A stretch of DNA of 64,000 nt, taken from NCBI GenBank assembly GCA_946965045.2, contig OX337231.1, positions 1 to 64,000 on the forward strand, read 5' to 3'. Below are positions 12,924 through 48,931 of the stretch, in pieces. The notes under the pieces were generated by a model. The model was not told the origin of the DNA, made no database searches, and saw only the letters and a list, made by a program, of their open reading frames with translations. The position numbers and the translations under genes are program-made. Origin of the DNA: Epithemia pelagica. Lineage: Eukaryota; Protista; Bacillariophyta. How positions within the stretch are numbered: position 1 is the first letter of the stretch; each line of letters starts with the position of its first letter.

Positions 12924-12967
12924 CCCTAAGGAGAAAGTGCCTGTCCGTAGGCCTACGTAGACTCTAG

Positions 12968-13110
12968 CGTCCCACTGCAGAACAGCCCCCATCCCACTTG
13001 TCCCACTGCAGAACCGCCCTCTGTCCCACTGCAGAAGTGCCCTGTCCCACTGCAGAACAGCCTGCTGTCCCACTGCAGAACAGCCCACTAGAACAGCCCT
13101 ATTCTAGTCA
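12968..13110 (+). repeat. Imperfect tandem repeats with core TCCCACTGCAGAA (alpha terminus)
   Basis: About six copies of the core at roughly 21-26 bp spacing. The reverse complement occurs at about 35045-35175 and 39250-39300. Confidence 0.85.
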
Positions 13111-13327
13111 TACCTATGCCCATGCTTATTAGTTAGTCTTAGCTCGACTAGTATCATTTCCCGTCACTACAAGTGCGACTGGGTCAGATTTTTGTGTGAA
13201 ATGACCCTTCTTTGGGCCTAATATTTTTTTGTGAGACGTGATTAGATTTTTTGTGAGATGACTCTTCTATGGGCCTTTTGATGATGGTCTTTAACCCGAC
13301 ACATTGTAACTACTAACTTAATACTAT

Positions 13328-14653
13328 TTACTTGAATGCTTTCTTTGCATATGGATTCCTTGGTAGAGCTGGTCGTGCCACAGACGGTCTGGCTGCTGTG
13401 GTTGCATGAGGTGTCTGCGTCACTGTCATGCCCATCCGTTGTTCAACACTCTGACACAGAAAAGCATGAAACGAATGGCTGTCGCATGTTACTTCGGACA
13501 TGAAATCAGTCATTGCTCTGGATTGTCCATTGGTCTTCCTTGACTCATATACATCGATCATCAGCCGCTTCAATCTTCGTTGTAAAGGACATGCACTGGG
13601 ATGGTGTTGCTTGTAGCCGCGCCTGCTGAACACATCAAAGCAGTAAAAGCAGGCCTTGTTGCTCAAGACTGTTCGGAAATTGACTTGGCACTGTCCTCTC
13701 TGGTGACCTGACTGACCACAGTGGAAGCATGCTCCATAGGGCAGACAGCTTTCACCATTGCATCCTGCCTCCTTGCACACAATGCATTCTCTTGTAAGCC
13801 TTGCCAGATAGGATTCAGCCTTTTCCGCATCAATGTCTTCATTCCTGACCCTCTCCCTGACTCTGGAGTGTCCACTTTGACTTGATTGTTCAACACACCA
13901 ATCACACACACCACAGCAATCCACCTCCAATCCGAATCGTCTTGACAGACCTTGTACTCGGCATGTTCTTTCGGCCAGCCACTTTGCTATTGAACTTGAG
14001 CCAAACACCGACTCAAGGTGAGCTCTTGATTCAGATCCAGTCAGTAATCCTTTGTCTTCAAGTAGCCTCAATGTCTGGTCTTCTTGGAGATCCCTTGCCG
14101 TGTGTCCTGTGCTGTACAACAATGTGACACTCCCATCAGGCTTTCTCTGACTTGGCCGTAGGCGTCCCACAGCTTGGACGATGTTCATTAGACTGTATAT
14201 CATGCCGCATACAATCACATGTCGACAATTGTGATTCTCATTACCACATAGTGCACATGTTGTTGAGACCAAGATTCGGATGTCCCCAGATCTCCACTGC
14301 TGGGCAACTGCTTCTTGTCTACTTGAAGGCTCATCCGATGACAGAGCTTCAACAGAAAGGTTGGTTGATTGCTTGAGGCACTGTGCAATGTCGGTACACT
14401 GCTGTTTAGTCGCCACAATCACATGTACACAGGTTGATGACTCTTTGGTTACTTTGCCTTTGGTGCAGATCACTGTGTCATGGACTAGTTGTGATGATTG
14501 GACTGTCTCAATTCGGAAACCCTTAGGGAAGATTCCCAATAGAGTTCTCCCCGTAATCAATCGATCGAGACGAAGGCCCAAGTATTCATAAAGACTCTCT
14601 ACCAGAGGCCCGGGAAGAGTTCCAGAGAGTGTGGTGAGGGGCACCCCAAATTG
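13328..14653 (-). pseudogene. 3' fragment of subfamily C YR-RecQ gene (helicase motifs III-VI, Zn domains)
   Basis: Nearly identical to the C-terminal half of ORF 31959-34814. The N-terminal residues of the listed ORF (to 14728) come from the adjacent beta terminus. Confidence 0.85.
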
Positions 14654-17600
14654 CCCTAAGGATATTTGCCTTTTTTGGGTGTCTTTAGTACTAGAGACCG
14701 TAGGATTTGAACGTGTGCATATGAGCACAAGGGGCTATAGTATCTGTGCATATGAGCAATGCTATATATGCCTTTTGTTGCAAAAGAGCACTGCCCCTTG
14801 TGCAGATGAGCACAGAATGTCTATGCCCCGCTCAAGTCTAATTTCTAAGCACTCATATTCAATATGAGTCCTGAATTTCATTGATTACTAACCATTACCG
14901 CACTCTTAGTTGTTCCCCCGTTCTTTTGGCGCGAAAAGCTTGCCTGCGTGCCCCTTCGCGCCAAACATTTTCACCTGAAAACCTCAATAGGCCCAACATC
15001 TTCACCTGAAAACCTCAATTGGCCCAACAAAAGGTCATTGTTGTTTCATGAATTATGACTCTTGCAAAGAAGCCCATCCTTGCTTTTGCTTGAGAGTCGG
15101 CTGGTTATGTCTCTTCCTCTGTTCCATGCACACGAGGAAACCAGCAATGGCTACCAACAATGGGCCTGGAACGCCATCTCCATCCCGGAGACGGCCTGTG
15201 AAGAAGATCCGTTCCGATCAGGGCATTGGCTTGTCATGTTTAGATGCTACAATTGTGACACCCTTTGGTATGGGATGCGGCATATGCAAGAAATCATTCG
15301 GAGAAAGTCTTTGGTCCATGCAGCGGCATCTAAATCAACATGGAGTCTGTGTCTCAGCAACTGACAACCGACTCCTTGTTGCAAGAAAACAGTCCCTTGA
15401 GCAAATTTTGCAAGAAGACCCTCATACCGCAAAAAACTTCTTCACGGGGAGGTCTGTTCTTGGATATTCTTGCAGGTGTCTTGTTGGCTGGACAAGACTC
15501 AGCAATGTTTTGCGTCATCTCTCCTCACCTAACTCTTGTGGAGCCATTGGGCCTGAGAGGGAACAATTGCAGGTCACTTCTTGTGGGAGGCTGGTATCTA
15601 TGACTGCTGTCAGTATGAAATATTCCCAAGAGGATCCAATCTTGAAAACAAAGAGAGCGGTCACCCAAACTTTCCATATGGTATCTGAGGAGATGGTTGA
15701 TTGTTTTGTTCCTTTGTTTCATCCATTGGCTCAGGAGGAACACTACTCTTCCAAGCCAGATGGAGCAACCTTTCAAGAACGGATGGAAAATTTGCTTTCT
15801 CTGACAACCACTAGCGGCAAAGATGAAGTCAACGAACCCATACTCAAGTTTTTCTATGATTTTGGAGAGAAGTGGTTGTTGCATGGCGCTCCAATTCATG
15901 TGAAAATGGTCCCAGCAAATTTTCGGTCGAAGCTTTTGGTATTTGATGGTACAAGGGAAAGTGGGTCACATGCTGGAGCAAATACGACCTACACATTCAC
16001 CAAGTTTCCAAACCGACTTGTTCCAGAGCTCAAGAAATTGTTGTGCTTCATCCACAAGCAGCAGCCATCCATTATGAAGAGAGAATGTGACTTACAGTCA
16101 TTACTTGTTGATCTGTGTCTCGAGACACCTGACTCTGTCAGGCACCATACTATGCTCATGACTTATGCGGTTGGCCGGACTTTGCAGCATAAGGACACCG
16201 CAGGGTCATTGTCCGTACTGGGCCCATCACGTATCGCAACAATGTATTCCGCTCTGCTCACCATTCTAAGGGCGAGTATATGTTCCTTGATCTACAAAAT
16301 GGACAAAGATTATTCTCAACAGGCCTTGACTCTAGTAAAACGGGCACAGGAATCCATAACAATCAATTTCTTGGCAAGTTCCATTCGACGCATGCGCGAA
16401 AAAGAAGCACTTATGCCATCTTCCCGGAAAGTGTCCATTCGAACCACAAAAGATATATTGGTTGACAACTTCCTTTTTAAATTTGATATTTGGACGAATG
16501 TTGTACCATGTATTGAAGAAAAGTGTATTTCATCTTTCAGAACTCTTCTGGTTGGTGACCAATGGACTGATTTCCTCAACCTAAATTTGCACTTGTACGT
16601 CAATTTGGCTCCATCTTCTGGATTGGTGTCTCTTCAGGTCGAGAAAGAATCTTCTATCATAACATCTGAAGTGATTCAAGTGCACCATGCCTTCAATGCA
16701 ACATCTGTTGATATTCTGGTATCATTCTTGGAACTTGCATTCCACGGAACAGGGTTGGGCTCCATGCGATATGCAGAAATTGAAAGGTGTCTGTTTAGTA
16801 GCATTCGTTGGCATGGCCAACAATGCTACTATTACAGTCACACCGAGAAAGTATACACTGCACTCAACAACAAACCTGGAAAGCTTGTTGAACACAAGCT
16901 ACCCAAGTCACTTGGACGCATATTTTTGGTCTTCAGAGTTGTATGTCAACACCTTCAGTCACAGCTGAAGCATGACTTGCGGAGACTTGTACCAGTGAGA
17001 AATAACAGGGTACACGAGATGACCGATGCTGTGGCAACAATCTTTGGCTTCGAAAACCGACCGGATTGCACACAAGTAAGGCACTTGTGGACATCAATCT
17101 CTAATATTCTTTTCCCGGAGTTTGATGAAATGTCGATCCAGAATCAGTACACAACCAAGACTGTGGCTGAACAGTCAGGTCACAGCCTCATAACACATCG
17201 TGACCATTATGGGTCAAGCAATGTAGCTGCAAAAGAAGACTTGTTCGAGACATATCATAAAGCACTGGGTGAAAAGTCTGTTGGGAAAGAATCAGTGACC
17301 ATGAAACGAGACTTGACGGATGGGGAGATATTGAGGACATTGCACAAACTCTTTGGGCCTAGTGCCACATACACGTGTTCTGAACAACACGCCATGTTGG
17401 CTTTTGCATCGAGAGAAAGCACATGTCATGGACACTTTGGTTTACCATGTGGAGGTGGCAAGTCACTATCATGGTTAGTCCCGGTGGTAGGAGCCAAGCT
17501 ACATCACTTGGCTCCCAAGACCTATATGGTAGTCGTGCCCTACAAATTTTTATCTGGTTACCATGAAGAACAAGTATCACGCAACTTGCCATCAGGTGTG

Positions 17601-17980
17601 GAAGTGTCTTCCATGACAGTTTCAGGCAATCAAGTTACGGCAGACCGACTGCCTGATGGTCTCCATGACTTCAAAATGTTGCCAGACATTGTTTTCTTCA
17701 GTCTCGAGGCCATATGGATGTTGGAGAAATATCATTCCTCTACTATAGAAGAGTGGGTGGAGAAGTCAGCTTTGGCCAAAATCATAATTGATGAGGTTCA
17801 CACAATTTACTCGGAGCTTTCCTTTCGGTCCAAATTTGATTGCCTTCCACGTCTTGTTCGCTACGGAGTGCCCGTCATGACCTTAAGTGGGTCCCTCCCA
17901 CGGTTTTCATTGCCAAGTCTTATGAGATACATGTCAATGACTCAAAGACAAGATCTCAAAGATATGACAATCGGATATGC
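14654..17980 (+). mobile_element. YR-RecQ telomeric element unit, beta terminus (subfamily A), ended by telomere addition
   Basis: Starts CCCTAAGGATATTTGCC, the same terminus as at 28852 and 38101. Confidence 0.85.
15147..17980 (+). pseudogene. Subfamily A YR-RecQ gene, open reading frame truncated after helicase motif III by telomeric repeats
   Basis: ATG of MATNNGPGTPSP at 15147. GTGLGSMRYAEI, CTQVRHLW and EQSGHSLITHRDHYG are YR motifs; LPCGGGKS, IIIDEVH and TLSGSL are helicase motifs. The frame then runs into RVRVRV from TTAGGG. Confidence 0.85.
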
Positions 17981-18507
17981 TAGGGTTAGGGTTAGGGTTA
18001 GGGTTAGGGTTAGGGTTAGGGTTAGGGTTAGGGTTAGGGTTAGGGTTAGGGTTAGGGTTAGGGTTAGGGTTAGGGTTAGGGTTAGGGTTAGGGTTAGGGT
18101 TAGGGTTAGGGTTAGGGTTAGGGTTAGGGTTAGGGTTAGGGTTAGGGTTAGGGTTAGGGTTAGGGTTAGGGTTAGGGTTAGGGTTAGGGTTAGGGTTAGG
18201 GTTAGGGTTAGGGTTAGGGTTAGGGTTAGGGTTAGGGTTAGGGTTAGGGTTAGGGTTAGGGTTAGGGTTAGGGTTAGGGTTAGGGTTAGGGTTAGGGTTA
18301 GGGTTAGGGTTAGGGTTAGGGTTAGGGTTAGGGTTAGGGTTAGGGTTAGGGTTAGGGTTAGGGTTAGGGTTAGGGTTAGGGTTAGGGTTAGGGTTAGGGT
18401 TAGGGTTAGGGTTAGGGTTAGGGTTAGGGTTAGGGTTAGGGTTAGGGTTAGGGTTAGGGTTAGGGTTAGGGTTAGGGTTAGGGTTAGGGTTAGGGTTAGG
18501 GTTAGGG
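17981..18507 (+). repeat. Telomeric (TTAGGG)n array
   Basis: Perfect hexamer array up to the gap. Confidence 0.99.
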
Positions 18508-18707
18508 NNNNNNNNNNNNNNNNNNNNNNNNNNNNNNNNNNNNNNNNNNNNNNNNNNNNNNNNNNNNNNNNNNNNNNNNNNNNNNNNNNNNNNNNNNNNN
18601 NNNNNNNNNNNNNNNNNNNNNNNNNNNNNNNNNNNNNNNNNNNNNNNNNNNNNNNNNNNNNNNNNNNNNNNNNNNNNNNNNNNNNNNNNNNNNNNNNNNN
18701 NNNNNNN
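18508..18707. other. 200-N assembly gap joining two telomere arrays
   Basis: Run of exactly 200 N. Confidence 0.99.
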
Positions 18708-19209
18708 ACCCTAACCCTAACCCTAACCCTAACCCTAACCCTAACCCTAACCCTAACCCTAACCCTAACCCTAACCCTAACCCTAACCCTAACCCTAACC
18801 CTAACCCTAACCCTAACCCTAACCCTAACCCTAACCCTAACCCTAACCCTAACCCTAACCCTAACCCTAACCCTAACCCTAACCCTAACCCTAACCCTAA
18901 CCCTAACCCTAACCCTAACCCTAACCCTAACCCTAACCCTAACCCTAACCCTAACCCTAACCCTAACCCTAACCCTAACCCTAACCCTAACCCTAACCCT
19001 AACCCTAACCCTAACCCTAACCCTAACCCTAACCCTAACCCTAACCCTAACCCTAACCCTAACCCTAACCCTAACCCTAACCCTAACCCTAACCCTAACC
19101 CTAACCCTAACCCTAACCCTAACCCTAACCCTAACCCTAACCCTAACCCTAACCCTAACCCTAACCCTAACCCTAACCCTAACCCTAACCCTAACCCTAA
19201 CCCTAACCC
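18708..19209 (-). repeat. Telomeric array, (CCCTAA)n on the + strand
   Basis: Perfect hexamer array. Confidence 0.99.
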
Positions 19210-21900
19210 ATGCGCATCATGTCGCATATTGACATCTCACTCAAATTCACACTCAAAACACAAGTCCACAATATCCACAACACTATACACCAAGTTCGCA
19301 CTGCACGAAACACACCTGGCCACTTGGTGAACAAAAATAGCAAAACATCAATAGATAAACCATTCAAATACCTTCAAGACACATCACTTGCGCATCATGT
19401 CGAATATTGACATCTCACTCAAATTCACACTCAAAACACAAGTCCACAATATCCACAACACTATACACCAAGTTTGCACTGCACGAAACACACCTGGCCA
19501 CTTGGTGAACAAAAATCGCAAAACATCAATAGATAAACCATTCAAATACCTTCAAGACACATCACTTGCGCATCATGTCGAATATTGACATCTCACTCAA
19601 ATTCACACTCAAAACACAAGTCCACAATATCCACAACACTATACACCAAGTTCGCACTGCACGAAACACACCTGGCCACTTGGTGAACAAAAATCGTAAA
19701 ACATCAATAGATAGACCATTCTAATACCTTCAAGACACATCACTTGTGAATCATGTCGCATATTGACGTCTCACTAAAATTCACACTCAAATCACAAGTC
19801 CTCAATATCCACAACACTATACTCCAAGTTCGCACTGCACGAAACACACCTTCCACTAACCCGAATACTCGCATCGCAACGAATGGTATTATGTAAACTT
19901 ATACTTTAGATTTTGCAAGGAAAGCCATGAATGTGCTTTTGCTTGTGTAGCATGTCGCATATTGACATCTCACTCAAATTCACACTCAAAACACAAGTCC
20001 ACAATATCCACAACACTATACACCAAGTTCGCACTGCACGAAACACACCTGGCCACTTGGTGAACAAAAATAGCAAAACATCAATAGATAAACCATTCAA
20101 ATACCTTCAAGACACATCACTTGCGCATCATGTCGAATATTGACATCTCACTCAAATTCACACTCAAAACACAAGTCCACAATATCCACAACACTATACA
20201 CCAAGTTTGCACTGCACGAAACACACCTGGCCACTTGGTGAACAAAAATCGCAAAACATCAATAGATAAACCATTCTAATATCTTCAAGACACATCCCAT
20301 GCGCATCATGTCGCATATTGACATCTCACTCAAATTCACACTCAAAACACAAGTCCACAATATCCACAACACTATACACCAAGTTCGCACTGCACGAAAC
20401 ACACCTGGCCACTTGGTGAACAAAAATCGTAAAACATCAATAGATAGACCATTCTAATACCTTCAAGACACATCACTTGTGAATCATGTCGCATATTGAC
20501 GTCTCACTAAAATTCACACTCAAATCACAAGTCCTCAATATCCACAACACTATACTCCAAGTTCGCACTGCACGAAACACACCTTCCACTAACCCGAATA
20601 CTCGCATCGCAACGAATGGTATTATGTAAACTTATACTTTAGATTTTGCAAGGAAAGCCATGAATGTGCTTTTGCTTGTGTAGCATGTCGCATATTGACA
20701 TCTCACTCAAATTCACACTCAAAACACAAGTCCACAATATCCACAACACTATACACCAAGTTCGCACTGCACGAAACACACCTGGCCACTTGGTGAACAA
20801 AAATAGCAAAACATCAATAGATAAACCATTCAAATACCTTCAAGACACATCACTTGCGCATCATGTCGAATATTGACATCTCACTCAAATTCACACTCAA
20901 AACACAAGTCCACAATATCCACAACACTATACACCAAGTTTGCACTGCACGAAACACACCTGGCCACTTGGTGAACAAAAATCGCAAAACATCAATAGAT
21001 AAACCATTCAAATACCTTCAAGACACATCACTTGCGCATCATGTCGAATATTGACATCTCACTCAAATTCACACTCAAAACACAAGTCCACAATATCCAC
21101 AACACTATACACCAAGTTTGCACTGCACGAAACACAAGTCCACAATATCCACAACATGATACATCAAGTTCGCACTGCACGAAACACACCTGGCCACTTG
21201 GTGAACAAAAATCGCAAAACATCAATAGATAAACCATTCTAATATCTTCAAGACACATCACTTGCAAATCATGTCGCATATTGACAACTCACTCAAATTC
21301 ACTCTCAAAACACAAGTCCACAATATCCACAACACTATACACCAAGTTTGCACTGCACGAAACACACCTGGCCACTTGGTGAACAAAAATCGCAAAACAT
21401 CAATAGATAAACCATTCAAATATCTTCAAGACACATCACTTGCGAATCATGTCGCATATTGACATCTCACTAAAATTCACTCTCAAAACACAAGTCCACA
21501 ATATCCACAACATTATACACCAAGTTTGCACTGCACGAAACACACCTGGCCACTTGGTGAACAAAAATCGCAAAACATCAATAGATAAACCATTCTAATA
21601 TCTTCAAGACACATCCCATGCGCATCATGTCGCATATTGACATCTCACTCAAATTCACACTCAAAACACAAGTCCACAATATCCACAACACTATACACCA
21701 AGTTCGCACTGCACGAAACACACCTGGCCACTTGGTGAACAAAAATCGTAAAACATCAATAGATAGACCATTCTAATACCTTCAAGACACATCACTTGTG
21801 AATCATGTCGCATATTGACGTCTCACTAAAATTCACACTCAAATCACAAGTCCTCAATATCCACAACACTATACTCCAAGTTCGCACTGCACGAAACACA
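19210..21900. repeat. 178-bp subtelomeric satellite with higher-order duplications
   Basis: Unit starts at 19210, 19388, 19566 and onward. It is interrupted by copies of the last ~50 nt of ORF B plus its 3' flank at about 19856-19950 and 20589-20683. Confidence 0.95.
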
Positions 21901-21950
21901 CCTTCCACTAACCCGAATACTCGCATCGCAACGAATGGTATTATGTAAAC

Positions 21951-24900
21951 TTATACTTTAGATTTTGCAAGGAAAGCCATGAATGTGCTTTTGCTTGTGT
22001 AGACTGTGGCCATGTAGTCTGCGAGTGAGCACTGAGCTTGTACAGATCCTGATATGAGGAGTCTTTTCAGTCGGTTCTTCAAGGGACAATTTGACAACGA
22101 ATGAGACTGGTACCATGGTCTCTCATGATAATCGAGACACTTGTAGCAAATCCTGCCTTTGTAATGGTTAGTCAAGAAATCACTGAACCGACAGTCCCTT
22201 CGAAAATGGTCTCCCCCGCAATTGAAACAACCCTTCGTCAAACAGGCATCACCTTGGCATTCTCTCCGACCACACACAAGACATCGTTCCTTCAAAGTCA
22301 TTAAGACAAGCATAGCATCATTTACTTGCGTAGAACGAATCTCTTCCTTTTGTTTGGCTTGGCTTCCAACTACTTTTACAGGGATCATTTTTTGCCTTCC
22401 AATACATACATCACATACGTTGCACTGTTCGTACGTCGAGCCAAATTTGCCAGCCAAAGATACAACCCGACACTTCCCTCTCTCAGTCTCCCAGTCCACA
22501 AGACCTTTTATGGTTCCAATTTGCATGTAATCTTGTTCGTTACTGGTATCAATAACACCAAGCTCTCTCAACCGATGGAAGTTCATCATCTCCTCCTTCT
22601 CCATTGCCGCTTGTCGTGTTGATGATAATTTGTTTGCAAATATCACAAAGGATGAAGTCCCAGTACGTTGTTTGGGACGAAGTCTTCCCAGTGCTTGAAC
22701 CACAGACATCAAGGAAAACAAATGGCCAACCACGACCACACAATGGCACTTTGGATTCTCGTTGCCCACCAATGCCACTGTTGAAGAAACTAGAATTGAT
22801 ATCGCTGAAGCCGACCATCTCTTGGCAATATCACGTTGCTTGCTCGTTGTTGTCTCCGATGTTACAAACTCCACGGGACCAAGGGACATTTCTTCCAAAC
22901 TTGCAACAACATCCATCCCAAGCTGCTTAGAAGCAACAATGACATGAATCCCATGTCCCAATCGAGTAAAAGAGTTCATGGTGGATTGAATAAAATCTTT
23001 GAATTTGTAACGAATAGCGACATCAACCACTACCGAGAACCGAAAACCAGATGGGAAGGAACCCAAAACCCTGTCGGAGTGCGAGATTGTCATGTCATCC
23101 AAGGTCCCCTTAGATAAGGCCAAATATTTCATTAATGGGGGAAGAAATCTCCGTGGCAAAGAACCACTCAAGGTCATAATGGGCACTTCATATTTTGCCA
23201 ACCGAGGCAAACATTCCAATCGTGTACGAAACCCAATTTCTGAGTAAATAGTGTGAATCTCATCCACAATGATCCTTCCCAGCTTTCCCGCCGTCACCCA
23301 CTCTTTTAGAATGAACGAGTGATTTCGTTCCAACACCCAAATCGCATCCAAGCTCATGAAGACGACATCGGGAAGGTTCTTCATATCAGAAATGACATCT
23401 GGTAATTCACCCAATGAGAAATCTGATGCTGTCAAAGTCACTGATCTGACATCAACTTTAGTCTGTTTCGCTGTAGATATCATACTCTCGTCATGATATC
23501 CCGCCAGGAATTTATAGGGAACAATGACTAGTGTTGTCTGTTGTTTGGTTCCATACAACCTCACCCCGGTTGTTGGCAAAATCCATGACATCGATTTACC
23601 CCCTCCACACGGCAAGCCAAAGTGACCATGTCTCTCATATTCCGAGCAAGTGTAGTGCAACATGTCCCGCTGCTGGTCGCAAGTGTAATTGGCAGCAGGC
23701 CCAAACAGTTTACGTAATGTGAGTAGTATCTGTTCGTCACTGAGTCCCTTCGCAATGACTGTCTCTTTCTGAACCAATTTTTCTCCCAAAGCCTTGTGGT
23801 ATATCATGAACAACTCCTCTTTCGTGTTTCCGGATAGAGATCCATAATGATCTCTATGGGTCCAATAACTATGACCCGACTGCTCTGCGACCATCTGAGT
23901 TGTATGCTGGTTATGTATTGCTGTCTCATCCACCTGGGGAAAAAGTACATTGGACACAGATGTCCACAAATGCCTGATTTGTGTACAGTCCGGGCGATCC
24001 TCAAACCCAAAGATGGTTGCCACAGCATCACCCATGTAGAATGCCCGATTATTTCTCACAGGAACAAGGCAACCAAGAGATTCATGGCGAAGTTCACATA
24101 GCACTCGAAAGACCATGTATGCTCGACTCAAGGTCATGCAAAGTTTGTGCTCAATCAAATTTTTACCTTTGTGGTGAACACTGAACGCTTTTTCACTGTG
24201 TGAGTAGTAATACACACAGCCTCCATGCCACCGCACGTCAGAAAACAGGCTACGAGAAATTTCAGTGTATCGCATGGACCCCAAACCTGTTCCATGAAAT
24301 GCCAATTCCAAATAGGAGGCAAGGACATCAATGTCGCAGAGATCATAGTCGTCCTGAAGAACAATATCCTCTTGGGAGTAATTACTGTGACCCGATGCCA
24401 AAGTCATTGTTGTCTTGCCCATAGAACTCCAACACACGAACAGTGGATATCGTCGATTCAGTAGATTCACCCAACGATTACCCTTGATCACCTTGCAAAG
24501 TGAAGCAACCAACTTGTCAAAGATGATCGGAATGACGTTCGACCATTTTTGAAACTTGAACATAAAACCATCAACAAGTATATCGTAGTTGTCTTGAAGG
24601 GACACTTTCCGTGAAGACGGTGTGAGCGACTCTCTCTCCCGCATACGCCGAATCGTACTTGCCAAAAAATTGACTGTGATGGAGTTTTGAACATTTTCCA
24701 CCAGCCGAGAAGCTTTCTCATGGTAGCCCCGTCCCATGAAGTATATCATTGAGCAAATACTGGCCCGAAGCATGGCCAAAATGGCTGACAGCATTGTCGC
24801 AATGTAGGAGGGACTCCAAACAGAAAGTGTCTCTGAACCTTCTTGCCCCCGGACAACTCTCCCTGCGCAGTAGGTCATGACTGTGGTATGATGCTGAACA

Positions 24901-25874: not shown

Positions 25875-26523
25875 TGTCGATAGAGGTTTTGCTGAGAGTG
25901 TTCAAGAGACATCTTTCATCGTTCATCAAAGAAAGGGAGTGATGACCCTTTGCAGAATTGCATTGGGCCCAATTTACTGGACGAATGATAGGTAGGTACA
26001 AAGAACTAGAGGCATAAACTAGGAATGGTCAAAATGGGATTTTGATGAGAACTAGTGATGGGTGAAATGAGATTTTTCTGTGAAATGCCAGCGTCATTTG
26101 GCGGGAAAAAGATTGTACAAAAAAATTAGTTGGTCATTTGTGTACAAATATATGTCACTTGTACACACATATTAGCTGGTTTGTTGTAACAAGGAAATTT
26201 TGTACAGCAAAGCAAGGGAAATTCAATCTTACGTTGATTCTTCTATGTAGAGTAGGGCGAGACAAAAACCTAACTGGCAGAGCTCTGAAAAGTATTTGGC
26301 CAGTATAGAGCATATTGAATATGACTGCTTTTGGGGAGTGGTCAAAGGGGCATAGACAAGGCCACTGCTCAATCGCAACAAAGGCATAACAAATTGCAGC
26401 TCATCCGCAACAAATCCTTGCTCATATGCAACAGGCACTATAGGATTTTGTGCTCATATGCACACGTTCAAATTCTACGGTCTCTAGTACTAAAAGCTCC
26501 AAAAAAGTGAAATATCCTTAGGG

Positions 26524-31800: not shown

Positions 31801-31955
31801 TGTGGTCGAAATCGACCTTTTTGTGGTCGCACTAAAATTTCGCACGCAACAATACAGTGATTCAAAATTGACCTTTTTGTGGTCGCGCATGTGATTCTAC
31901 AGAATGAGCTTAGTGCGCACGACAAAAAGGTCGATTTCTAGCAAAACCCTTAGGG
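28853..31955 (-). mobile_element. YR-RecQ unit, delta terminus, subfamily F gene (31623 to 28853, defective)
   Basis: Terminus CCCTAAGGGTTTTGC at 31955 with CGACC-N6-GGTCG repeats. ORF has GADRFSEV, VVRQFWTS, SKHSQQTAMSNY and QPCGSGKT but lacks helicase motif II. Predicted intron 30417-30491. Confidence 0.8.
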
Positions 31956-34900
31956 TCTATGGAAAAAGGCAGGCATCTTATAGAAGAAGTGCAAAAATGT
32001 CCTGTATTGCACGTTCTGGCACCAATCATTCGGAGAATGAGAGAACTTACCAAACAACTTCCCAAGCAGAACAAAGTCACTGTGAACTCAACACGGGACA
32101 TCATTGTGCGATCCCACATGTTCCGCTATGACATCTGGTCACGTTTGATTGGAACCATTGCTATCAAATGCGATCAAATTTTCACAACACTTTTCGATGG
32201 AGAGACTTGGTCGATTTTCACACGATTATCACAATACTTGGTTGTATTGGAGGACGGGAATGGGTCCTTCAATTTCTCCACTGAAATGGATGGACAAGAG
32301 TTGAAGTCCAGTGAACTTCGACTAAAAGATCAACTAGAGAATGTGACAATCGAACACTACATGAAAGAGCTTGTCGGCCTCATGGACATGTCTTTCCATG
32401 GAACTGGAGGTGGTGCGATGAGGTACGAAGAACTTAAAAGGATGACAAACAAACACTGCAAGTGGCACAATAGCACAATCTACTATGTGGCGACCACTAT
32501 CAAACGCTTCAATCACAAACAACGTCAAACAACGATAGAAAGGAAACTCCCTGAGAAATTGGCTCGATTCTATTTGCTGTATGACTTTCTCTCCCGACAG
32601 ACCATTGGGCCCAATGAGATGTCCCCCCAATTTATGCTGGGGACAAATCCAGAATCAATGCAAGTGACTGTGCAACAAATCTTCGGACTGCAGACTCTTC
32701 CCGAGTGTCTAGATATTCGACACTTGTGGACATCCATTTCGAACATTGTCTTTTCGAAGAACTCACTTTCCGGCAAACTCGCGGTCGACGAAAATATTGC
32801 ACGACTCTCGGGTCATTCGGCCCAAACCCACAATGACTTCTATGCATCAAAGGAAGAAGGATGCCAAGAGACTATATACGAGATATACCACAATGCAATT
32901 GGTCAAGGGGAGCTCAACGAGACCTACCATCTGGCCCCACTGTCCATCCCAGACCTTGACTATGCCTTGAAAATTTTGTACGGCGGGACTGCTCTGTATC
33001 GAAGTACCGAGCAACAACAGATGGTTTATACGACAATCAATCAAAAGCATGAAAATTATCATGTCTCCCTTGAATGTGGAGGAGGCAAGAGCCTAGCATG
33101 GACTCTACCTGTTTTTGCAAAGACTTATTTTGGGCGCCACATGGCGGGACTACACATTGTCATCCTACCCTACAAGTTTCTTGCAGCCTTTCATGTGTCC
33201 CAGCTACAACAGCTTTTCGATAAGAAGGTTGTTGCCAAGATTGCCTTTCTACAAAATTCAATGGTCAGCCAGAATTCCTATCCAGATTTTCTTGACGATG
33301 TGGGAGGAAATTTTCCAGATGTGATGTTCTGTACGGTGGACTCGATCGGGAGTCTTTTCAAATTTCACCATCTCTTTGTGCATGAACTGTCATCAAAACA
33401 CAAAAATGCCCGATTTTATCTCGATGAAGTGCATACACTATTCAGTGAACAGTTCAGAATAGCATATGACAACATACAGAACATCGGGCAATTTGGGGTG
33501 CCCCTCACCACACTCTCTGGGACTCTTCCCGGGCCTCTGGTAGAAAGTCTTGATGAATACTTGGGCCTTCGTCTCGATCGATTGATTACGGGGAGAACTC
33601 TATTGGGAATCTTCCCTAAGGGTTTCCGAATTGAGACAGTCCAATCATCACAACTAGTCCATGACACAGTGATCTGCACCAAAGGCAAAGTAACCACAGA
33701 GTCATCAACCTGTGTACATGTGATTGTGGCGACTAAACAGCAGTGTACCGACATTGCACAGTGCCTCAAGCAATCAACCAACCTTTCTGTTGAAGCTCTG
33801 TCATCGGATGAGCCTTCAAGTAGACAAGAAGCAGTTGCCCAGCAGTGGAGATCTGGGGACATCCGAATCTTGGTCTCAACAACATGTGCACTATGTGGTA
33901 ATGAGAATCACAATTGTCGACATGTGATTGTATGCGGCATGATATACAGTCTAATGAACATCGTCCAAGCTGTGGGAGGCCTACGGCCAAGTCAGAGAAA
34001 GCCTGATGGGAGTGTCACATTGTTGTATAGCACAGGACACACGGCAAGGGATCTCCAAGAAGACCAGACATTGAGGCTACTTGAAGACAAAGGATTACTG
34101 ACTGGATCTGAATCAAGAGCTCACCTTGAGTCGGTGTTTGGCTCAAGTTCAATAGCAATGTGGCTGGCCGAAAGAACATGCCGAGTACAAGGTCTGTCAA
34201 GACGATTCGGATTGGAGGTGGATTGCTGTGGTGTGTGTGATTGGTGTGTTGAACAATCAAGTCAAAGTGGACACTCCAGAGTCAGGGAGAGGGTCAGGAA
34301 TGAAGACATTGATGCGGAAAAGGCTGAATCCTATCTGGCAAGGCTTACAAGAGAATGCATTGTGTGCAAGGAGGCAGGATGCAATGGTGAAAGCTGTCTG
34401 CCCTATGGAGCATGCTTCAACTGTGGTCAGCCAGGTCACCAGAGAGGACAGTGCCGAGTCGATTTCCAAACAGTCTTGAGCAACAAGGCCTGCTTTTACT
34501 GCTTTGATGTGTTCAGCAGGCGCGGCTACAAGCAACACCATCCCAGTGCATGTCCTTTACAACGAAGATTGAAGCGGCTGATGATCGATGTATATGAGTC
34601 AAGGAAGACAAATGGACAATCCAGAGCAATGACTGATTTCATGTCCGAAGTAACATGTGACAGCCATTCGTTTCATGCTTTTCTGTGTCAGAGTGTTGAA
34701 CAACGGATGGGCATGACAGTGACACAGACACCTCATGCAACCACAGCAGCCAGACCATCTGTGGCACGACCAGCTCTACCAAGGAATCCATATGCAAAGA
34801 AAGCATTCAAGTAGATAGTATTAAGTTAGTAGTTACAATGTGTCGGGTTAAAGACCATCATCAAAAGGCCCATAGAAGAGTCATCTCACAAAAAATCTAA

Positions 34901-35218
34901 TCACGTCTCACAAAAAAATATTAGGCCCAAAGAAGGGTCATTTCACACAAAAATCTGACCCAGTCGCACTTGTAGTGACGGGAACTGAAACTAGTCGAGC
35001 TAGGACTAACTAATAAGCATGGGCATAGGTATGACTAGACTAGGGCTGTTCTAGTGGGCTGTTCTGCAGTGGGACAGCAGGCTGTTCTGCAGTGGGACAG
35101 GGCACTTCTGCAGTGGGACAGAGGGCGGTTCTGCAGTGGGACAAGTGGGATGGGGGCTATTCTGCAGTGGGACGCTAAAGTCTACGTAGGCCTACGGACA
35201 GGCACTTTCTCCTTAGGG
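31956..35218 (+). mobile_element. YR-RecQ unit, alpha terminus, subfamily C gene lacking its N-terminus (ORF 31959-34814)
   Basis: ORF has GGAMRYEEL, LDIRHLWTS, RLSGHSAQTHNDFY, LECGGGKS, YLDEVH, TLSGT and Zn domains. The alpha terminus lies downstream of the stop; the 5' part is cut at the 31955 junction. Confidence 0.85.
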
Positions 35219-38101
35219 CACGACTACCATATAGGTCTTGGGAGCCAAGTGATGTAGCTTGGCTCCTACCACCGGGACTAACCATGATAGTGACTTGCCA
35301 CCTCCACATGGTAATCCAAAGTGTCCATGACATGTGCTTTCTCTCGATGCAAAAGCCAACATGGCGTGTTGTTCAGAACACGTGTATGTGGCACTAGGCC
35401 CAAAGAGTTTGTGCAATGTCCTCAATATCTCCCCATCCGTCAAGTCTCGTTTCATGGTCACTGATTCTTTCCCAACAGACTTTTCACCCAGTGCTTTATG
35501 ATATGTCTCGAACAAGTCTTCTTTTGCAGCTACATTGCTTGACCCATAATGGTCACGATGTGTTATGAGGCTGTGACCTGACTGTTCAGCCACAGTCTTG
35601 GTTGTGTACTGATTCTGGATCGACATTTCATCAAACTCCGGGAAAAGAATATTAGAGATTGATCTCCACAAGTGCCTTACTTGGGTGCAATCCGGTCGGT
35701 TTTCGAAGCCAAAGATTGTTGCCACAGCATCGGTCATCTCGTGTACCCTGTTATTTCTCACTGGTACAAGTCTCCGCAAGTCATGCTTCAGCTGTGACTG
35801 AAGGTGTTGACATACAACTCTGAAGACCAAAAATATGCGTCCAAGTGACTTGGGTAGCTTGTGTTCAACAAGCTTTCCAGGTTTGTTGTTGAGTGCAGTG
35901 TATACTTTCTCGGTGTGACTGTAATAGTAGCATTGTTGGCCATGCCAACGAATGCTACTAAACAGACACCTTTCAATTTCTGCATATCGCATGGAGCCCA
36001 ACCCTGTTCCGTGGAATGCAAGTTCCAAGAATGATACCAGAATATCAACAGATGTTGCATTGAAGGCATGGTGCACTTGAATCACTTCAGATGTTATGAT
36101 AGAAGATTCTTTCTCGACCTGAAGAGACACCAATCCAGAAGATGGAGCCAAATTGACGTACAAGTGCAAATTTAGGTTGAGGAAATCAGTCCATTGGTCA
36201 CCAACCAGAAGAGTTCTGAAAGATGAAATACACTCTTCTTCAATACATGGTACAACATTCGTCCAAATATCAAATTTAAAAAGGAAGTTGTCAACCAATA
36301 TATCTTTTGTGGTTCGAATGGACACTTTCCGGGAAGATGGCATAAGTGCTTCTTTTTCGCGCATGCGTCGAATGGAACTTGCCAAGAAATTGATTGTTAT
36401 GGATTCCTGTGCCCGTTTTACTAGAGTCAAGGCCTGTTGAGAATAATCTTTGTCCATTTTGTAGATCAAGGAACATATACTCGCCCTTAGAATGGTGAGC
36501 AGAGCGGAATACATTGTTGCGATACGTGATGGGCCCAGTACGGACAATGACCCTGCGGTGTCCTTATGCCGCAAAGTCCGGCCAACCGCATAAGTCATGA
36601 GCATAGTATGGTGCCTGACAGAGTCAGGTGTCTCGAGACACAGATCAACAAGTAATGACTGTAAGTCACATTCTCTCTTCATAATGGATGGCTGCTGCTT
36701 GTGGATGAAGCACAACAATTTCTTGAGCTCTGGAACAAGTCGGTTTGGAAACTTGGTGAATGTGTAGGTCGTATTTGCTCCAGCATGTGACCCACTTTCC
36801 CTTGTACCATCAAATACCAAAAGCTTCGACCGAAAATTTGCTGGGACCATTTTCACATGAATTGGAGCGCCATGCAACAACCACTTCTCTCCAAAATCAT
36901 AGAAAAACTTGAGTATGGGTTCGTTGACTTCATCTTTGCCGGTAGTGGTTGTCAGAGAAAGCAAATTTTCCATCCGTTCTTGAAAGGTTGCTCCATCTGG
37001 CTTGGAAGAGTAGTGTTCCTCCTGAGCCAATGGATGAAACAAAGGAACAAAACAATCAACCATCTCCTCAGATACCATATGGAAAGTTTGGGTGACCGCT
37101 CTCTTTGTTTTCAAGATTGGATCCTCTTGGGAATATTTCATACTGACAGCAGTCATAGATACCAGCCTCCCACAAGAAGTGACCTGCAATTGTTCCCTCT
37201 CAGGCCCAATGGCTCCACAGGAGTTAGGTGAGGAGAGATGACGCATAACATTGCTGAGTCTTGTCCAACCAACAAGACACCTGCAAGAATATCCAAGAAC
37301 AGACCTCCCCGTGAAGAAGTTTTTTGCGGTATGAGGGTCTTCTTGCAAAATTTGCTAAAGGGACTGTTTTCTTGCAACAAGGAGTCGGTTGTCAGTTGCT
37401 GAGACACAGACTCCATGTTGATTTAGATGCCGCTGCATGGACCAAAGACTTTCTCCGAATGATTTCTTGCATATGCCGCATCCCATACCAAAGGGTGTCA
37501 CAATTGTAGCATCTAAACATGACAAGCCAATGCCCTGATCGGAACGGATCTTCTTCACAGGCGGTCTCCGGGATGGAGATGGCGTTCCAGGCCCATTGTT
37601 GGTAGCCATTGCTGGTTTCCTCGTGTGCATGGAACAGAGGAAGAGACATAACCAGCCGACTCTCAAGCACAAGCAAGGATGGGCCTCTTTGCAAGAGTCA
37701 TAATTCATGAAACAACAATGACCTTTTGTTGGGCCAATTGAGGTTTTCAGGTGAAGATGTTGGGCCTATTGAGGTTTTCAGGTGAAGATGTTGGGCGCGA
37801 AGGGGCACGCAGGCAAGCTTTTCGCGCCAAAAGAACGGGGGAACAACTAAGAGTGCGGTAATGGTTAGTAATCAATGAAATATAGGACTCATATTGAATA
37901 TGAGTGCTTAGAAATTAGACTTGAGCGGGGCATAGACATTCTGTGCTCATCTGCACAAGGGGCAGTGCTCTTTTGCAACAAAAGGCATATATAGCATTGC
38001 TCATATGCACAGATACTATAGCCCCTTGTGCTCATATGCACACGTTCAAATCCTACGGTCTCTAGTACTAAAGACACCCAAAAAAGGCAAATATCCTTAG
38101 G
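35219..38101 (-). mobile_element. YR-RecQ unit, beta terminus, subfamily A pseudogene (37609 to 35219, nonsense at 37355)
   Basis: Near-identical to 14654-17540. GAG>TAG change in QSLEQ. Confidence 0.85.
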
Positions 38102-39249
38102 ACACAACAGTATTCAACCCGAGAGCTAAAATGGTTCTTTTTGCCCCTATTTCTGGGTCTGTTGCATGAATTTGGCTCCAAAATGGAGTCGAGTGATGTA
38201 TGGAACTGTGGAGTAAGCAGCAAAATGGTCTTGCCAAACCACAGAGAGATTGAGATGGTTTTTCTATGTTGTTTTCCATCAGGAGAGATGCAGATTGTGG
38301 ACTAGACCGTTGGATTGGTTGAACCACAAAGTCAGATACAGTGTTGTGTTGGTGGATGTATGTGTGGAACGGAACCACCAAAGAGAATGAAGTTTGATTG
38401 GTGGATGTACGTAATGAGCGGAACCACCAGGAGTATGAGATTGGCTTGAGTGCCACTACCAGGAGTATGAAATTTGTGATCGGATATGGGAGAGCACGAG
38501 GGTCAGAGTCATGGTTTGGTTGTTCTCATGCAATTGCCTGAACAAGATCCATTTGGACTCGACCCATGTATTTGATTGTTGGCTCTGGCTATGCATTGCA
38601 TACTTCCCCATGTACTTTGTGAGTTGTTTGATCACGATGCAATGACAAAGATGGTTTATTTGGTGCTTAAGAAGGAGAACTAGAGGCACAATCACCTCGT
38701 CAGTGGACGCTGGAATCGCGAGGGGACCGAGAAATGGTCGCGGTAGTGGGCGGAATTTGGGCGATCTAGCTATCTGTCGGCGAGCCCTAGCCCCTCGCCA
38801 GTCGCTTCCCCTCGCCAGTCGCTTCTGTTGTTGGTAGATAACGTAGACACTTCTTTGTTTTGGACGATATTTCATCCAGCAACGAGGTCGTTTCTTGATT
38901 CGACAAAAATTCCTAACTTTTGCTTTTTTCGTGTACAAGAAGTATTCTTCTACAGACTTGTCGCTTTCCCGCCAAAAAAGCAAAAATCTAGCGCTAGTAG
39001 CTTTATGAGCCAATGAACAAGTACGGCCATATTGAATATGACCACTTGAGAAGTAAATAGAGGGCATAGGTAAATTCCTGGCTCAATCGCAACGGGGGTT
39101 ATGAAAAATTGCAGCTCATCTGCAAAATGAGCATAACAAATTTGCTCATATGCAACAAAGCACTGTAGGATATTCTGCTCATATGCACACGTTCAAATCC
39201 TACGGTCTCTAGTACTAAAACATGCCAAAAAAGGGGAAAATACTTAGGG
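38102..39249 (-). mobile_element. beta' terminus unit (matches 26930-27284) followed by unrelated, probably Copia-derived sequence
   Basis: 38895-39249 mirrors the unit at 26930-27284. 38717-38745 resembles the PPT/LTR start of the Copia at 63794-63822. Confidence 0.65.
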
Positions 39250-39341
39250 TGGTTCTGCAGTGGGACAAGTGGGATGGGGGCTGTTCTGCAGTGGGACGCT
39301 AGAGTCTACGTAGGCCTATGGACAGGCACTTTCTCCTTAGG
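39250..39341 (-). mobile_element. alpha-terminus stub (~92 bp)
   Basis: Only the terminus and two repeats remain before the next junction. Confidence 0.8.
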
Positions 39342-41161
39342 CGAGAGGTCATTAATTGTCAAGTCATTTCCATTGAGTTGAGTCCCATTAGATTCAATGG
39401 AATAATTGAACCAACCACAGTCATCCTGTATCACGTTAATTGGGCATCCATTGAGGTCAGTGAAAGCCATCCAGTCCAAGTGAGAAAAGATTTCTGAGCA
39501 GACACTGTCGCAGTGGACTTTCAATACCGACAGAAGGCTGGACCAAAGACCATATGCAAACTTATGACTCTGCACCACTATGTCTCCTGTGGAGGTCACA
39601 GTGACCTTACACTCCGTTGGTTGTTGACTTTGTAGTTCTCGTAGTTGCCTAATCATAGGACAGAGAACATGCACAGACACGCACTGTCAAACCTGCTTCA
39701 AAAGAGCTGCTCCTCTTTGCAGCACCTCTGAATCAAAATGGTAGATTGAAGAGCACACAGCTCCTCGAAGAAGACACAAGACATCAGAACACATACTTGC
39801 AGAGTTGCCTGGTCGGACAAAGGTTAATGACCCTTCATTTTCACGACACATCCGAGACAAACAGTATTTCACAACCAAGCAATCTTGGGGCAATTTCTGG
39901 ATTGGCTCCATGAAAAGACCCAGCAAGATTCTTGGGATGGCCCGAACAAGGTCATTCCTGTCACAGTCACGAAGGCTTCTCTGGTGTTGAGGAGAAATAT
40001 TCTGTTGGAAAATGAAGCACAGCAGCTTCTTGAGCTCCCGACCGATCACATCGTCATTGTGTCGAAATGTGAATGTGTTGTTTTGATTGACCTCATCAAT
40101 CTCCATTCCATCCAAAACAACAAGAGCAGCACGGAAATTTCCAGGAGTCCGTTGAACATGTAGTCGGACATGATCTTTAATCCAAACCTCTCCTCCTTGC
40201 AGGATCTCAAGGAGAACTGAGTCTGTAGTGTCTGTGCTTGCCCAGTCAACCATTTCAACCAGCCGGCTGGTTAAATTCTCACGGTACTGGTAGGCCAGAT
40301 CGTAAAACATGCTGGTGTACGTACGCACACCCATAGAACCTGCAAGCATTGGCTGTAGAATTGCAGCTGTCTGATCACTGTTCCATGGGGTATCACTTGT
40401 TTCCACTCCAGGGATCAACCTGCAACAGACTGTTGTCACACAAGAAGTTCTTGTTGCACTTGAACCATTGCATACTCCTCCACTATGGCGACAGTGATCT
40501 GCAAGTGCTCTTCGTGTCTTGAAAATTTCTCCACAAACGCAGCAATGACCCATCACAGTCTCCAGGATACTTGATGACCTGGTTTCTGTAGTGTTTAATT
40601 GTTGCATGTGGCTCTTACACTGTGCCAACATGTCTTTTAAGGAAACCCTGGTCACCCACTGCCGGTGTTTCTTCAAATGCCTTTGCAAGGACGATGTCGA
40701 AAAACCAATTGGAACTTTACAAACCAAACAATAAATATCAAAATGAGACACCCTGATGCCATGGTGATTGTCAAAGGCATACCCAGTCAATGGGTCAAAC
40801 AAGGGGGAAGAATCTGACATGGTCAATGGAGGAACTGTGCAAGGTACCAATGAGAGCGAGACGAGAGATAGATAGATGGGGTGGAGTGAGGTCATTGGGC
40901 CCATAGAAATTCATATGGGCCAAATGACCTTGGCAGTCCCAAGGGAAAAGGCAATAATAATTACTATAGGTTTTGATTGTACTTTGTGGGATGAGGGGCT
41001 GTGCGAAGGTGGGATGAGGGGCTGTGCGAAGGTGGGATGAGGGGCTGTGCGAAGGCGGGATGAGGGCTGTGCGAAGGCGGGATGAAGGAGAATAGTAGGA
41101 GGGGAGGGTGGGAAGCCAGGATCTACATAGCTCTACGTAGAGACCTAGTTTATCCTTAGGG
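39342..41161 (-). mobile_element. YR-RecQ unit, gamma terminus, 5' part of subfamily D gene (40904 to 39342, in-frame TGA at 39687)
   Basis: Terminus CCCTAAGGATAAACTAGG with GAAGGTGGGATGAGGGGCTGTGC repeats at about 40985-41085. ORF has CLVC..QRHLKKH and aligns by eye to subfamily C (VHVLCPMIRQLREL vs LHVLAPIIRRMREL). Confidence 0.8.
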
Positions 41162-41852
41162 ACAATTTCTGGATTGGCTCCATGAAAAGACCCAGCAAGA
41201 TTCTTGGGATGGCCCGAACAAGGTCATTCCTGTCACAGTCACGAAGGCTTCTCTGGTGTTGAGGAGAAATATTCTGTTGGAAAATGAAGCACAGCAGCTT
41301 CTTGAGCTCCCAACCGATCACATCGTCATTGTGTTGAAATGTGAATGTGTTGTTTTGATTGACCTCATCAATCTCCATTCCATCCAAAACAACAAGAGCA
41401 GCACGGAAATTTCCAGGAGTCCGTTGAACATGTAGTCGGACATGATCTTTAATCCAAACCTCTCCTCCTTGCAGGATGTCAAGGAGAACTGAGTCTGTAG
41501 TGTCTGCGCTTGCCCAGTCAACCATTTCAACCAGCCGGCTGGTTAAATTCTCACGGTACTGGTAGGCCAGACCGTGAAACATGCTGGTGTACGTACGCAC
41601 ACCCATAGAACCTGCAAGCATTGGCTGTAGAATTGCAGCTGTCTGATCACTGTTCCATGGGGTATCACTTGTTTCCACTCCAGGGATCAACCTGCGAAGG
41701 TGGGATGAGGGGCTGTGCGAAGGTGGGATGAGGGGCTGTGCGAAGGTGGGATGAGGGCTGTGCGAAGGCGGGATGAAGGGGAATAGTAGGAGGGGAGGGT
41801 GGGAAGCCAGGATCTACATAGCTCTACGTAGAGACCTAGTTTATTCTTAGGG
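41162..41852 (-). mobile_element. Internally deleted gamma unit
   Basis: Terminus and repeats are joined at about 41693 directly to an internal piece of the D gene (duplicate of 39895-40425). Confidence 0.8.
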
Positions 41853-41910
41853 GAGGGTGGGAAGCCAGGATCTACATAGCTCTACGTAGAGACCTAGTTT
41901 ATCCTTAGGG
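41853..41910 (-). mobile_element. gamma-terminus stub (58 bp), innermost unit joined to host DNA
   Basis: ATCCTTAGGG|CAAATTGT. The paralogous host region at about 56014 reads TTGGGCAAATTGT. Confidence 0.8.
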
Positions 41911-48888: not shown

Positions 48889-48931
48889 GTCCCCGCCAGT
48901 CAACATGCCATGGAATTGATGACTGGCTCCC

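Follow-up and report, generated by a model that had tools for sequence, protein, structure and literature searches.

Stacked TLH-type helicase units at two chromosome ends of the diatom Epithemia pelagica, with centromere-side termini joined through GG(G) and a possible role for the elements' own recombinase-like domain and helicase

Introduction

Subtelomeric helicase genes such as those of Y' and TLH units have, to our knowledge, been known for decades with no agreed function or mode of spread. Here we describe stacks of helicase-encoding units at two chromosome ends of the diatom Epithemia pelagica, contained in a stretch of 64,000 nucleotides (GenBank assembly GCA_946965045.2, contig OX337231.1, positions 1 to 64,000 of the forward strand) that is called the window below. 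We file them as TLH-type units, a class that the initial annotation had not recognised, according to their architecture and behaviour, as measured against published descriptions of fungal TLH. The Y' elements of yeast are likewise subtelomeric helicase-encoding units that stand in tandem arrays and spread between chromosome ends, but their copies are separated by normally oriented telomere repeats and they spread by homologous recombination. We know of no recombinase domain in Y' elements.

The TLH units used for comparison were TLH region I of M. oryzae, TLHcr of F. oxysporum, tlh of S. pombe, UTASa of U. maydis, and those of Monosiga. Discrete telomere-like boundaries of TLH regions have been reported in fungi (PMC1635262; bioRxiv 10.1101/2024.02.27.582403). 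In M. oryzae the centromere-side boundary lies at CCTAACC..., with divergence at the first or second C (PMC1635262), while TLH regions of F. oxysporum are full-length or truncated, single or arrayed, and often have single telomere repeats in interstitial positions (F. oxysporum preprint). TLH proteins of fungi and Monosiga carry two N-terminal C2H2 motifs and a TLH domain of ~250 aa upstream of RecQ motifs (bioRxiv 10.1101/2024.02.27.582403). The units described here share with these a telomere-adjoining position, an open reading frame (ORF) pointing toward the telomere (X family excepted), tandem repeats, C2H2-type motifs, a conserved domain immediately before the helicase (with weak matches to RecQ models here), a discrete telomere-like boundary on the centromere side (46 distinct joints), and full and truncated copies in arrays. 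They differ in having a host that is not a fungus, with the nearest named relative coming from a diatom, in their deeper stacks of 11 segments, and in the attachment of the X family by the 3' side of its ORF.

In behaviour the nearest analogue is the telomere-capping Helitrons of Paramecium, which are also DNA elements confined to chromosome ends, with an absolute bias in terminus orientation, internal satellites, ORF orientation that varies by clade, and an encoded nuclease-helicase protein (PMC13085455). Those Helitrons encode an HUH Rep and Pif1, have two ends (LTS and RTS), and lie within normally oriented telomere repeats (PMC13085455); the elements described here have a recombinase-like domain with a superfamily 2 (SF2) helicase, one defined end, and a single inverted hexamer. 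Assignment to Helitrons proper (HUH Rep plus Pif1-type helicase; 5'-TC ... CTRR-3' between A and T) was rejected, as only DEAD and Helicase_C were found and the termini read TTAGG(G) with a variable flank.

Telomeric retrotransposons (HeT-A/TART, MoTeR/FoTeR, SART/TRAS, and the Penelope-like Athena/Coprina elements) resemble the present elements in their head-to-tail stacks at chromosome tips, defined centromere-side end, variable loss on the telomere side, and short pairing at the joint. They encode or need a reverse transcriptase (RT), have poly(A) or a C-strand-like sequence at their proximal end, and join onto or into telomere repeats, in contrast to the absence of RT, the G-strand-like terminal hexamer, and the non-telomeric GG(G) recipients found here. 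No RT domain occurs in or adjoining any stack element, and together with the G-strand-like hexamer this led us to reject the telomeric non-long terminal repeat and Penelope-like class. With Cryptons and other eukaryotic tyrosine-recombinase transposons the elements share a domain of tyrosine-recombinase type and short homology at the recombination site, which in Cryptons takes the form of 4-6 bp direct repeats (PMC3212892). Cryptons differ in that they are two-ended, carry no helicase, insert at internal sites, and are thought to move via a circle; no relationship of the domain to Cryptons was detected at the sequence level, and Crypton identity was rejected given the one defined end, the constant loss of the recipient's distal part, and the lack of a duplication. 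A telomere resolvase (protelomerase), an enzyme that turns a palindromic target into hairpin ends, was likewise rejected: CCTTAGG is no palindrome, and subterminal palindromes occur in some families only, 20-40 nt inside the end.

Results

Joints between stacked units

The window holds two contig ends placed telomere to telomere:

17981-18507, plus strand: terminal telomere of the left contig, (TTAGGG)x88
18508-18707, no strand: gap of N x200 between two separate contigs placed telomere to telomere
18708-19209, plus strand: terminal telomere of the right contig, (CCCTAA)x84

Exact look-ups found proteins of the left and right sides recorded on different contigs of ERZ21939226 in ENA (17,929 and 62,107 bp), so the gap abuts two independent chromosome ends. 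Neither sequence nor frame is continuous across the gap, and three ORFs that span it (15048-19232, 17977-18714 and 18502-19227) are artefacts. Self-comparison resolved the right piece into eleven segments between the telomere and host sequence, each with a shared motif on its centromere side and an arbitrary internal start on its telomere side. The left piece is the mirror arrangement, with two segments and a telomere added within a helicase ORF at about 17980.

Followed inward from the telomere, each unit ends in ...(C)CTTAGG(G), that is, one telomere unit in the reverse direction. The initial annotation had placed 13 joints with this motif in the window, and all of them were found in place. 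On the plus strand, the two left-piece joints (12924 and 14654) read CCCTAAGG, and those of the right piece at 26516, 28845, 31948, 35211, 41154 and 41903 read CCTTAGGG; at 38095 and 39335 CCTTAGG is followed by a base other than G, and at 27278, 39243 and 41846 the leading C is missing, leaving CTTAGGG. Set against its background frequency, a comparison that the initial annotation had proposed, CCTTAGG is clearly enriched in the window (14 copies versus 4.3 +/- 1.7 expected, with 14 or more in 0 of 100 shuffles).

12924-12931, minus strand: joint of an X-type terminus (3' side of its ORF) onto flanking sequence, reading CCCTAAGG on the plus strand
14654-14661, minus strand: joint of a B (A2-type) terminus onto X cut at the equivalent of 33486, with CCC/GGG in common with intact X
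26516-26523, plus strand: joint of an A1 terminus, proximal end of segment 19207-26523
27278-27284, plus strand: joint of an A3 terminus (segment 26524-27284) onto B cut at the equivalent of 36531; intact target GATGGGCCCAGT
28845-28852, plus strand: joint of a B/A2 terminus (segment 27285-28852, ORF residues 2-358)
31948-31955, plus strand: joint of a D terminus (segment 28853-31955) onto X cut at 31956
35211-35218, plus strand: joint of an X terminus (segment 31956-35218) onto B cut at the equivalent of 17542, with TAGGG in common with intact B
38095-38101, plus strand: joint of a B/A2 terminus (segment 35219-38101), GG only, then A
39243-39249, plus strand: joint of an A3 terminus (segment 38102-39249) onto an X 3' end, in its 23-bp repeat region
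39335-39341, plus strand: joint of an X terminus (92-bp remnant 39250-39341), GG only, then C
41154-41161, plus strand: joint of a C terminus (segment 39342-41161) onto another C copy
41846-41852, plus strand: joint of a C terminus (segment 41162-41852) onto a C end, in its G-rich subterminal part
41903-41910, plus strand: innermost joint, C terminus (58-bp remnant 41853-41910) onto host sequence

The X segment on the left side (12920-14656) is the reverse complement of 33486-35221 at 98.6% identity.

To widen the census, the window was combined with L001-L006 and L014, seven more ends from this assembly that were reached via members of the same protein clusters, for a total of nine contig ends. 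The 49 joints that they hold represent 46 distinct flanks and fall into eight terminus families (A1, A2, A3, D, E, F, X and C). The uniform polarity claimed by the initial annotation holds throughout, with CCCTAAGG on the strand heading to the contig end or telomere in 49/49 joints. On the seven further ends none of the features that the initial annotation had named as refuting its reading (mixed polarity, long homology, multi-repeat telomere tracts) was found, and the joints show neither long homology nor such tracts. A G directly follows TTAGG in 38 of the 46 distinct flanks. The eight diverged terminus families have (C)CTTAGG(G), and nothing else, in common at the tip; the A, E and F types additionally share a subterminal CTACGG...GTAC block, and in several families a palindrome lies 20-40 nt inward of the end.

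A variant of the D-type terminus (L003 6978-6992) reads AAAACTATTAGGG in place of AAAACCCTTAGGG, retaining TTAGGG but not the preceding CC. Two sites of correct polarity, at 11989-11997 in the window and L006 14597-14605, are possible extra joints of a candidate ninth terminus type: both read CCCTAAGCG, then GAA(A)TCATC, then a stretch rich in GCGCGC. BLAST finds no likeness between them, and 11995-12923 holds no ORF of the family.

Recipient sites and the replacement of chromosome tips

For 21 joints an uninterrupted copy of the recipient is present elsewhere in the data. The crossover in these intact targets has GG in 20/21 and GGG in 19/21, against background frequencies of 0.05 and 0.0125 in the same DNA, and GG is preceded by A in 12 cases, by T in 7 and by C in 2. 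The overlap at the joint is 2-5 nt, with a recipient consensus of W-GG-G. The initial annotation had given the target homology as 2-3 G; such homology is real, though the span is wider. The sequences it listed for five uninterrupted targets are likewise correct, but the G run is not the sole overlap in every case, one target sharing 5 nt (TAGGG). At recipients in which GG is followed by another base, that base appears in the joint, and at those with T or C before GG the joint nonetheless carries the element's A. The crossover therefore falls after TTA and at the latest at the end of GG(G). A cut after (C/T)CCTT in the manner of poxvirus topoisomerase was also considered, as this pentamer precedes AGGG in six of the eight families; it was rejected because A is retained where the recipient has T or C, so that the crossover must sit further 3'.

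Self-comparison in search of a distal resumption of the interrupted recipients found none. Since the distal part of the recipient is always gone, the joints are end replacements and not insertions, and a two-ended insertion was rejected. Each joint represents a tip replaced by DNA that starts exactly at the donor terminus and runs outward: the donor strand ...TTAGG(G)-3' has been made contiguous with the recipient's GG(G), and all DNA outward of the joint is of donor type. A stack arises as later replacement events cut into earlier ones. At the innermost joint of the right piece the recipient's host paralog, at 56014, reads TTGGGCAAATTGT. The host DNA below this joint (41908-43122) is an 86% identical paralog of 56016-57220, 14 kb further in; the chromosome tip was lost inside a duplicated gene. 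One recipient site in the B ORF, GATGG|GCCCAG, has been used twice, by an A3 terminus (window 27278) and an A2-like terminus (L003 4548), through either re-use of a hot spot or conversion of the terminus. L002 and L006 have in common a 5.2-kb block whose start coincides exactly with an A1 terminus and which includes an older distal joint but sits on different recipients, an arrangement compatible with the transfer of a whole tip.

These data bear on two explanations that differ from the one we favour below. Host repair without involvement of the element's protein, either by microhomology-mediated end joining or break-induced replication from other subtelomeres or by fusion of short telomeres that keeps one repeat, typically leaves microhomology of 2-5 nt, and both the blocks common to several ends and the existence of joints without a terminus (see below) speak for it. 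Single telomere repeats at joints are also typical of eroded-telomere fusions. Such repair would not be expected to pick the same starting nucleotide across eight families and 46 distinct joints, nor to keep one polarity and exactly one repeat throughout; no examined end has a terminus abutting a real telomere in the orientation of a donor telomere; and the conservation of recombinase-type catalytic residues across 52 sequences (see below) is a further point against it. A single exact endpoint in eight diverged families means that host repair alone is insufficient, and we consider this explanation unlikely.

The second is a conservative site-specific exchange, in which a donor terminus and a W-GG-G site would trade whole tips through the recombinase, reciprocally and with no copying. 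Only swaps of the same orientation relative to the centromere would be viable, which would account for the absolute polarity, and blocks that move together, as in L002 and L006, fit as well. A match of 2-3 nt beside the cleavage site also resembles the homology check that tyrosine recombinases make at strand swapping. A search for reciprocal exchange products among the nine ends found none, there being no distal target fragment on a former donor flank at GG(G). Copy number has clearly grown, and replication is thus needed at some step, which argues against an exchange free of copying; we regard this explanation as quite improbable.

Architecture of the elements

Outward from its terminus, a unit comprises a leader of ~0.65 kb, then an ORF of ~1300 aa, and finally a satellite array that reaches the telomere. 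The main coding and repeat features are as follows:

15048-17985, plus strand: B-type ORF, 52% identical to A1, pointing toward the telomere, helicase cut by telomere healing at ~17980
19211-21903, no strand: array of the 178-bp satellite, forming the distal part of A1, with the telomere seeded inside it
21951-25874, minus strand: full A1 ORF, 1307 aa, with the four-region architecture
about 22683-23615, minus strand: A1 SF2 helicase
about 23769-24395, minus strand: A1 recombinase-like domain
28744-31623, minus strand: D ORF, with a recombinase-like domain at 29410-30036
31959-34814, plus strand: X-type ORF, 951 aa left, 32% identical to A1 residues 386-1305, with a recombinase-like domain at about 32286-32918

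The C ORF of segment 39342-41161 lies on the minus strand and has one stop. The A1 (1307 aa), B, D, X and C ORFs form one family with 22-52% identity. Their alignment reveals four regions: an N-terminal C-x2-C-x12-H-x4-H motif (C2H2-like), a conserved middle domain (residues about 494-702 in A1), an SF2 helicase, and a C-terminal CCHC knuckle. Pfam identified DEAD and Helicase_C in these ORFs (A1 residues 754-1064) and nothing else, with matches to RecQ family models at E 1e-5 to 1e-6, far below the cut-off.

The ORF of the X family points toward its own terminus and away from the telomere, whereas the ORFs of the other families point away from the terminus. This difference in orientation between families fits a cis site at the DNA level better than the end of an mRNA. 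In the window, L001, L005 and L014 the order is ORF, 178-bp array, telomere, with the array of the latter three healed by a telomere at other positions. Telomere starts differ between ends: two positions in the 178-bp satellite (window 19207-19215, L001 15200-15210), the helicase ORF (window 17975-17985), and an E-type leader (L004 1-12). As telomere repeats begin at such different places, these ends are healed de novo by telomerase. The leaders of the E and D types contain several spaced copies of the telomere-like GGCCCTAA(G/A), oriented as the terminus is (L004 1376-1460, L003 3283-3361, window ~31660-31710), which could be binding sites for telomere-repeat proteins or promoter elements.

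This anatomy also bears on RNA-mediated addition, in which a transcript ending ...CCUUAGGG-3' would be reverse-transcribed from the chromosome 3' end (...CCC) by an RT acting in trans, either telomerase or the RT of a retroelement, much as for HeT-A or MoTeR but with a G-rich template end. The strand topology and a primer-template pairing of 2-3 nt fit, the stacks resemble arrays of telomeric retroelements in their defined proximal and variable distal ends, segments of 58 and 92 bp could be abortive copies, and the genome has RTs of Copia type. However, the lack of RT noted above applies to this route too; the template would be antisense to the ORF, and include the upstream leader, in seven of the eight families; and the copies hold kilobases of satellite and lack both poly(A) and a fixed distal end. 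RNA and DNA single-strand folds of six termini gave no stable or common structure (z-scores -2.2 to +0.9). The missing RT, antisense template, satellite content and lack of an RNA fold together make the RNA route very unlikely.

A tyrosine recombinase-like middle domain

A profile of the middle domain matched 358 protein clusters among 1.84 billion, mostly of 1300-1600 aa. The relatives that we examined lie on 4-10 kb metagenome contigs whose breaks fall in tandem repeats, and a look-up of 26 family proteins by cluster gave a single relative from a named organism, GAX27885.1 of the diatom Fistulifera solaris, besides metagenome proteins with a generic name or none. A word-based search for stand-alone short relatives of the domain found none. 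One distant relative from other metagenomes has a second ORF of 296 aa, for which no Pfam match is recorded, after the helicase ORF (L008 6715-7605, L009 4596-5486). CCTAAG occurs 120-390 bp upstream of the ATG in L007, L008/L009 and L011 and is absent in L010 and L012, a weak hint that the terminus may be conserved in relatives from other metagenomes.

Among 52 sequences drawn from the 358 clusters, the motifs G-x-G-x-x-R-x-x-E, K, R-H-x-W-T-S and G-H-S-x-x-T-x-x-x-Y either do not vary or are conserved in at least 90%. No variation is seen in R, K, R and H, while Y (residue 677 of the 1307-aa ORF) is kept in at least 90%, and the spacing from H to Y is 9. Judged from this alignment, the order and spacing of the motifs appear to be those of the catalytic residues of tyrosine recombinases. 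AlphaFold2 models of the middle domain reached a predicted local distance difference test (pLDDT) score of 91 (91.1 for one model). In a Foldseek comparison of the models with the PDB the best match was XerA (E 3.6e-4, probability 1.0, template modelling score 0.50), and the remaining list, consisting of Cre, XerH, Tre, IntI, HP1 integrase and topoisomerase IB, makes up essentially all matches. An hhalign comparison with the single E. coli XerD placed R141 on the arginine of box I; only box I aligned, and weakly (E 0.07). The predicted structures thus show a recombinase-type fold, and recombinase activity of the domain may be inferred from them.

The literature searched contains no account of the GG(G) rule, of a telomeric element that combines a recombinase and a helicase, or of the TLH domain having a recombinase fold.

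Discussion

A model for the movement of TLH-type units

We think the chances are slightly better than even that the stacks at the two chromosome ends formed by joining of the elements' centromere-side termini through GG(G), with the recombinase-like domain and helicase of the element acting in the process. In such a mechanism the recombinase-like domain would nick the donor strand at or just after TTAGG(G), the helicase would unwind the nicked strand, and the recipient would be joined via 2-5 paired bases. Two routes are conceivable for the last step. In route (a), the recipient's 3' end (...CC(C)) would be extended on the unwound strand, out to the donor telomere. In route (b), the recombinase-linked 3' end would be transferred directly to a 5'-OH of the recipient. 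The data do not separate the two, and the polarity fits both.

The initial annotation had read more from the polarity, taking it as opposite to priming by RT or from a 3' end and hence as a sign that a 3'-phosphotyrosine donor was joined to the chromosome's 5' end. This does not follow, because a duplex joint hides which strand joined first, and polarity therefore gives no proof of 3'-phosphotyrosine chemistry. At every joint the telomere-ward strand ends ...CC(C)-3', and this end could anneal to a ...TTAGGG-3' template and be extended, with the same topology as in HeT-A or MoTeR. Relative to telomeric retroelements it is only the sequence of the terminal hexamer that is reversed, being G-strand-like instead of C-strand-like. 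The idea of a tyrosine recombinase, whose chemistry the initial annotation had found to fit the polarity, gains independent backing from the conserved motifs and fold matches.

Several points weigh against a role for the element's own proteins as outlined here. The recombinase assignment draws on motifs and a structure prediction; searches of Pfam and the PDB with the sequence of the middle domain returned nothing meaningful, and the canonical H-x-x-R lacks a conserved His. We saw neither a free form of the element nor a second defined end, and neither a circle junction nor a reciprocal product. The block in L002 and L006 could alternatively stem from later homologous recombination between copies that are 98-99% identical. 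Route (b) has the particular difficulty that normal DNA 5' ends carry a phosphate, unless the enzyme itself cleaves the recipient. In addition, joints lacking the canonical terminus occur at L005 about 8467, L004 about 262 and L006 14535, which implies that another joining process also acts on these ends. These joints, between a satellite array and an ORF fragment, a leader and an ORF, and the B ORF and an unrelated 60 nt, respectively, also lack GG(G).

A stronger version of the model, in which the conserved TLH domain would be an active tyrosine recombinase that together with the helicase makes these units autonomous DNA elements, transplanting their own telomere onto damaged tips at W-GG-G, is one that we put forward tentatively, the odds being somewhat against it.

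Other features of the window

Apart from the stacks, the window contains long intron-free ORFs and elements of Copia-like and piggyBac-like kind; a scan of it for Rfam families and tRNAs found none. Immediately inside the left-arm stack, an ORF of 1085 aa on the minus strand (7690-10947) has a transposase domain of piggyBac type (DDE_Tnp_1_7, E 3e-43). Two Copia-type elements lie at 48698-55274 and 57635-63926, with RVT_2 ORFs at 48932-51190/51209-55045 (minus strand) and 58179-59675/59688-63659 (plus strand). Both look recently inserted, as their flanking direct repeats are 100% identical (191 bp at 48698 and 55084; 122 bp at 57635 and 63805). A single ORF of 941 aa on the minus strand (640-3465) holds the unusual combination of leucine carboxyl methyltransferase and Rieske 2Fe-2S domains.

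Implications for subtelomeric helicase genes

Fungal TLH regions with telomere-like boundaries were already known, and what is added here is a TLH-type variant together with a mechanistic lead in the form of a recombinase-like domain. The present analysis supplies three leads, a nucleotide-precise attachment site, a GG(G) rule for recipients, and a candidate catalytic domain fused to a helicase, which make the movement of subtelomeric helicase units between chromosome ends biochemically testable. If the mechanism is true, a DNA element that brings its own telomere would join telomerase, telomeric retrotransposons and recombination-based maintenance as a mode of end repair, and mobile elements with tyrosine recombinases would gain a new life style. 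The units would then be a DNA-based, RT-free counterpart of telomeric retrotransposons, represented by no fewer than 358 protein clusters, which come from metagenomes and a diatom. Should the fungal TLH domain prove homologous, the same mechanism would also account for the subtelomeric helicase genes of fungi and choanoflagellates.

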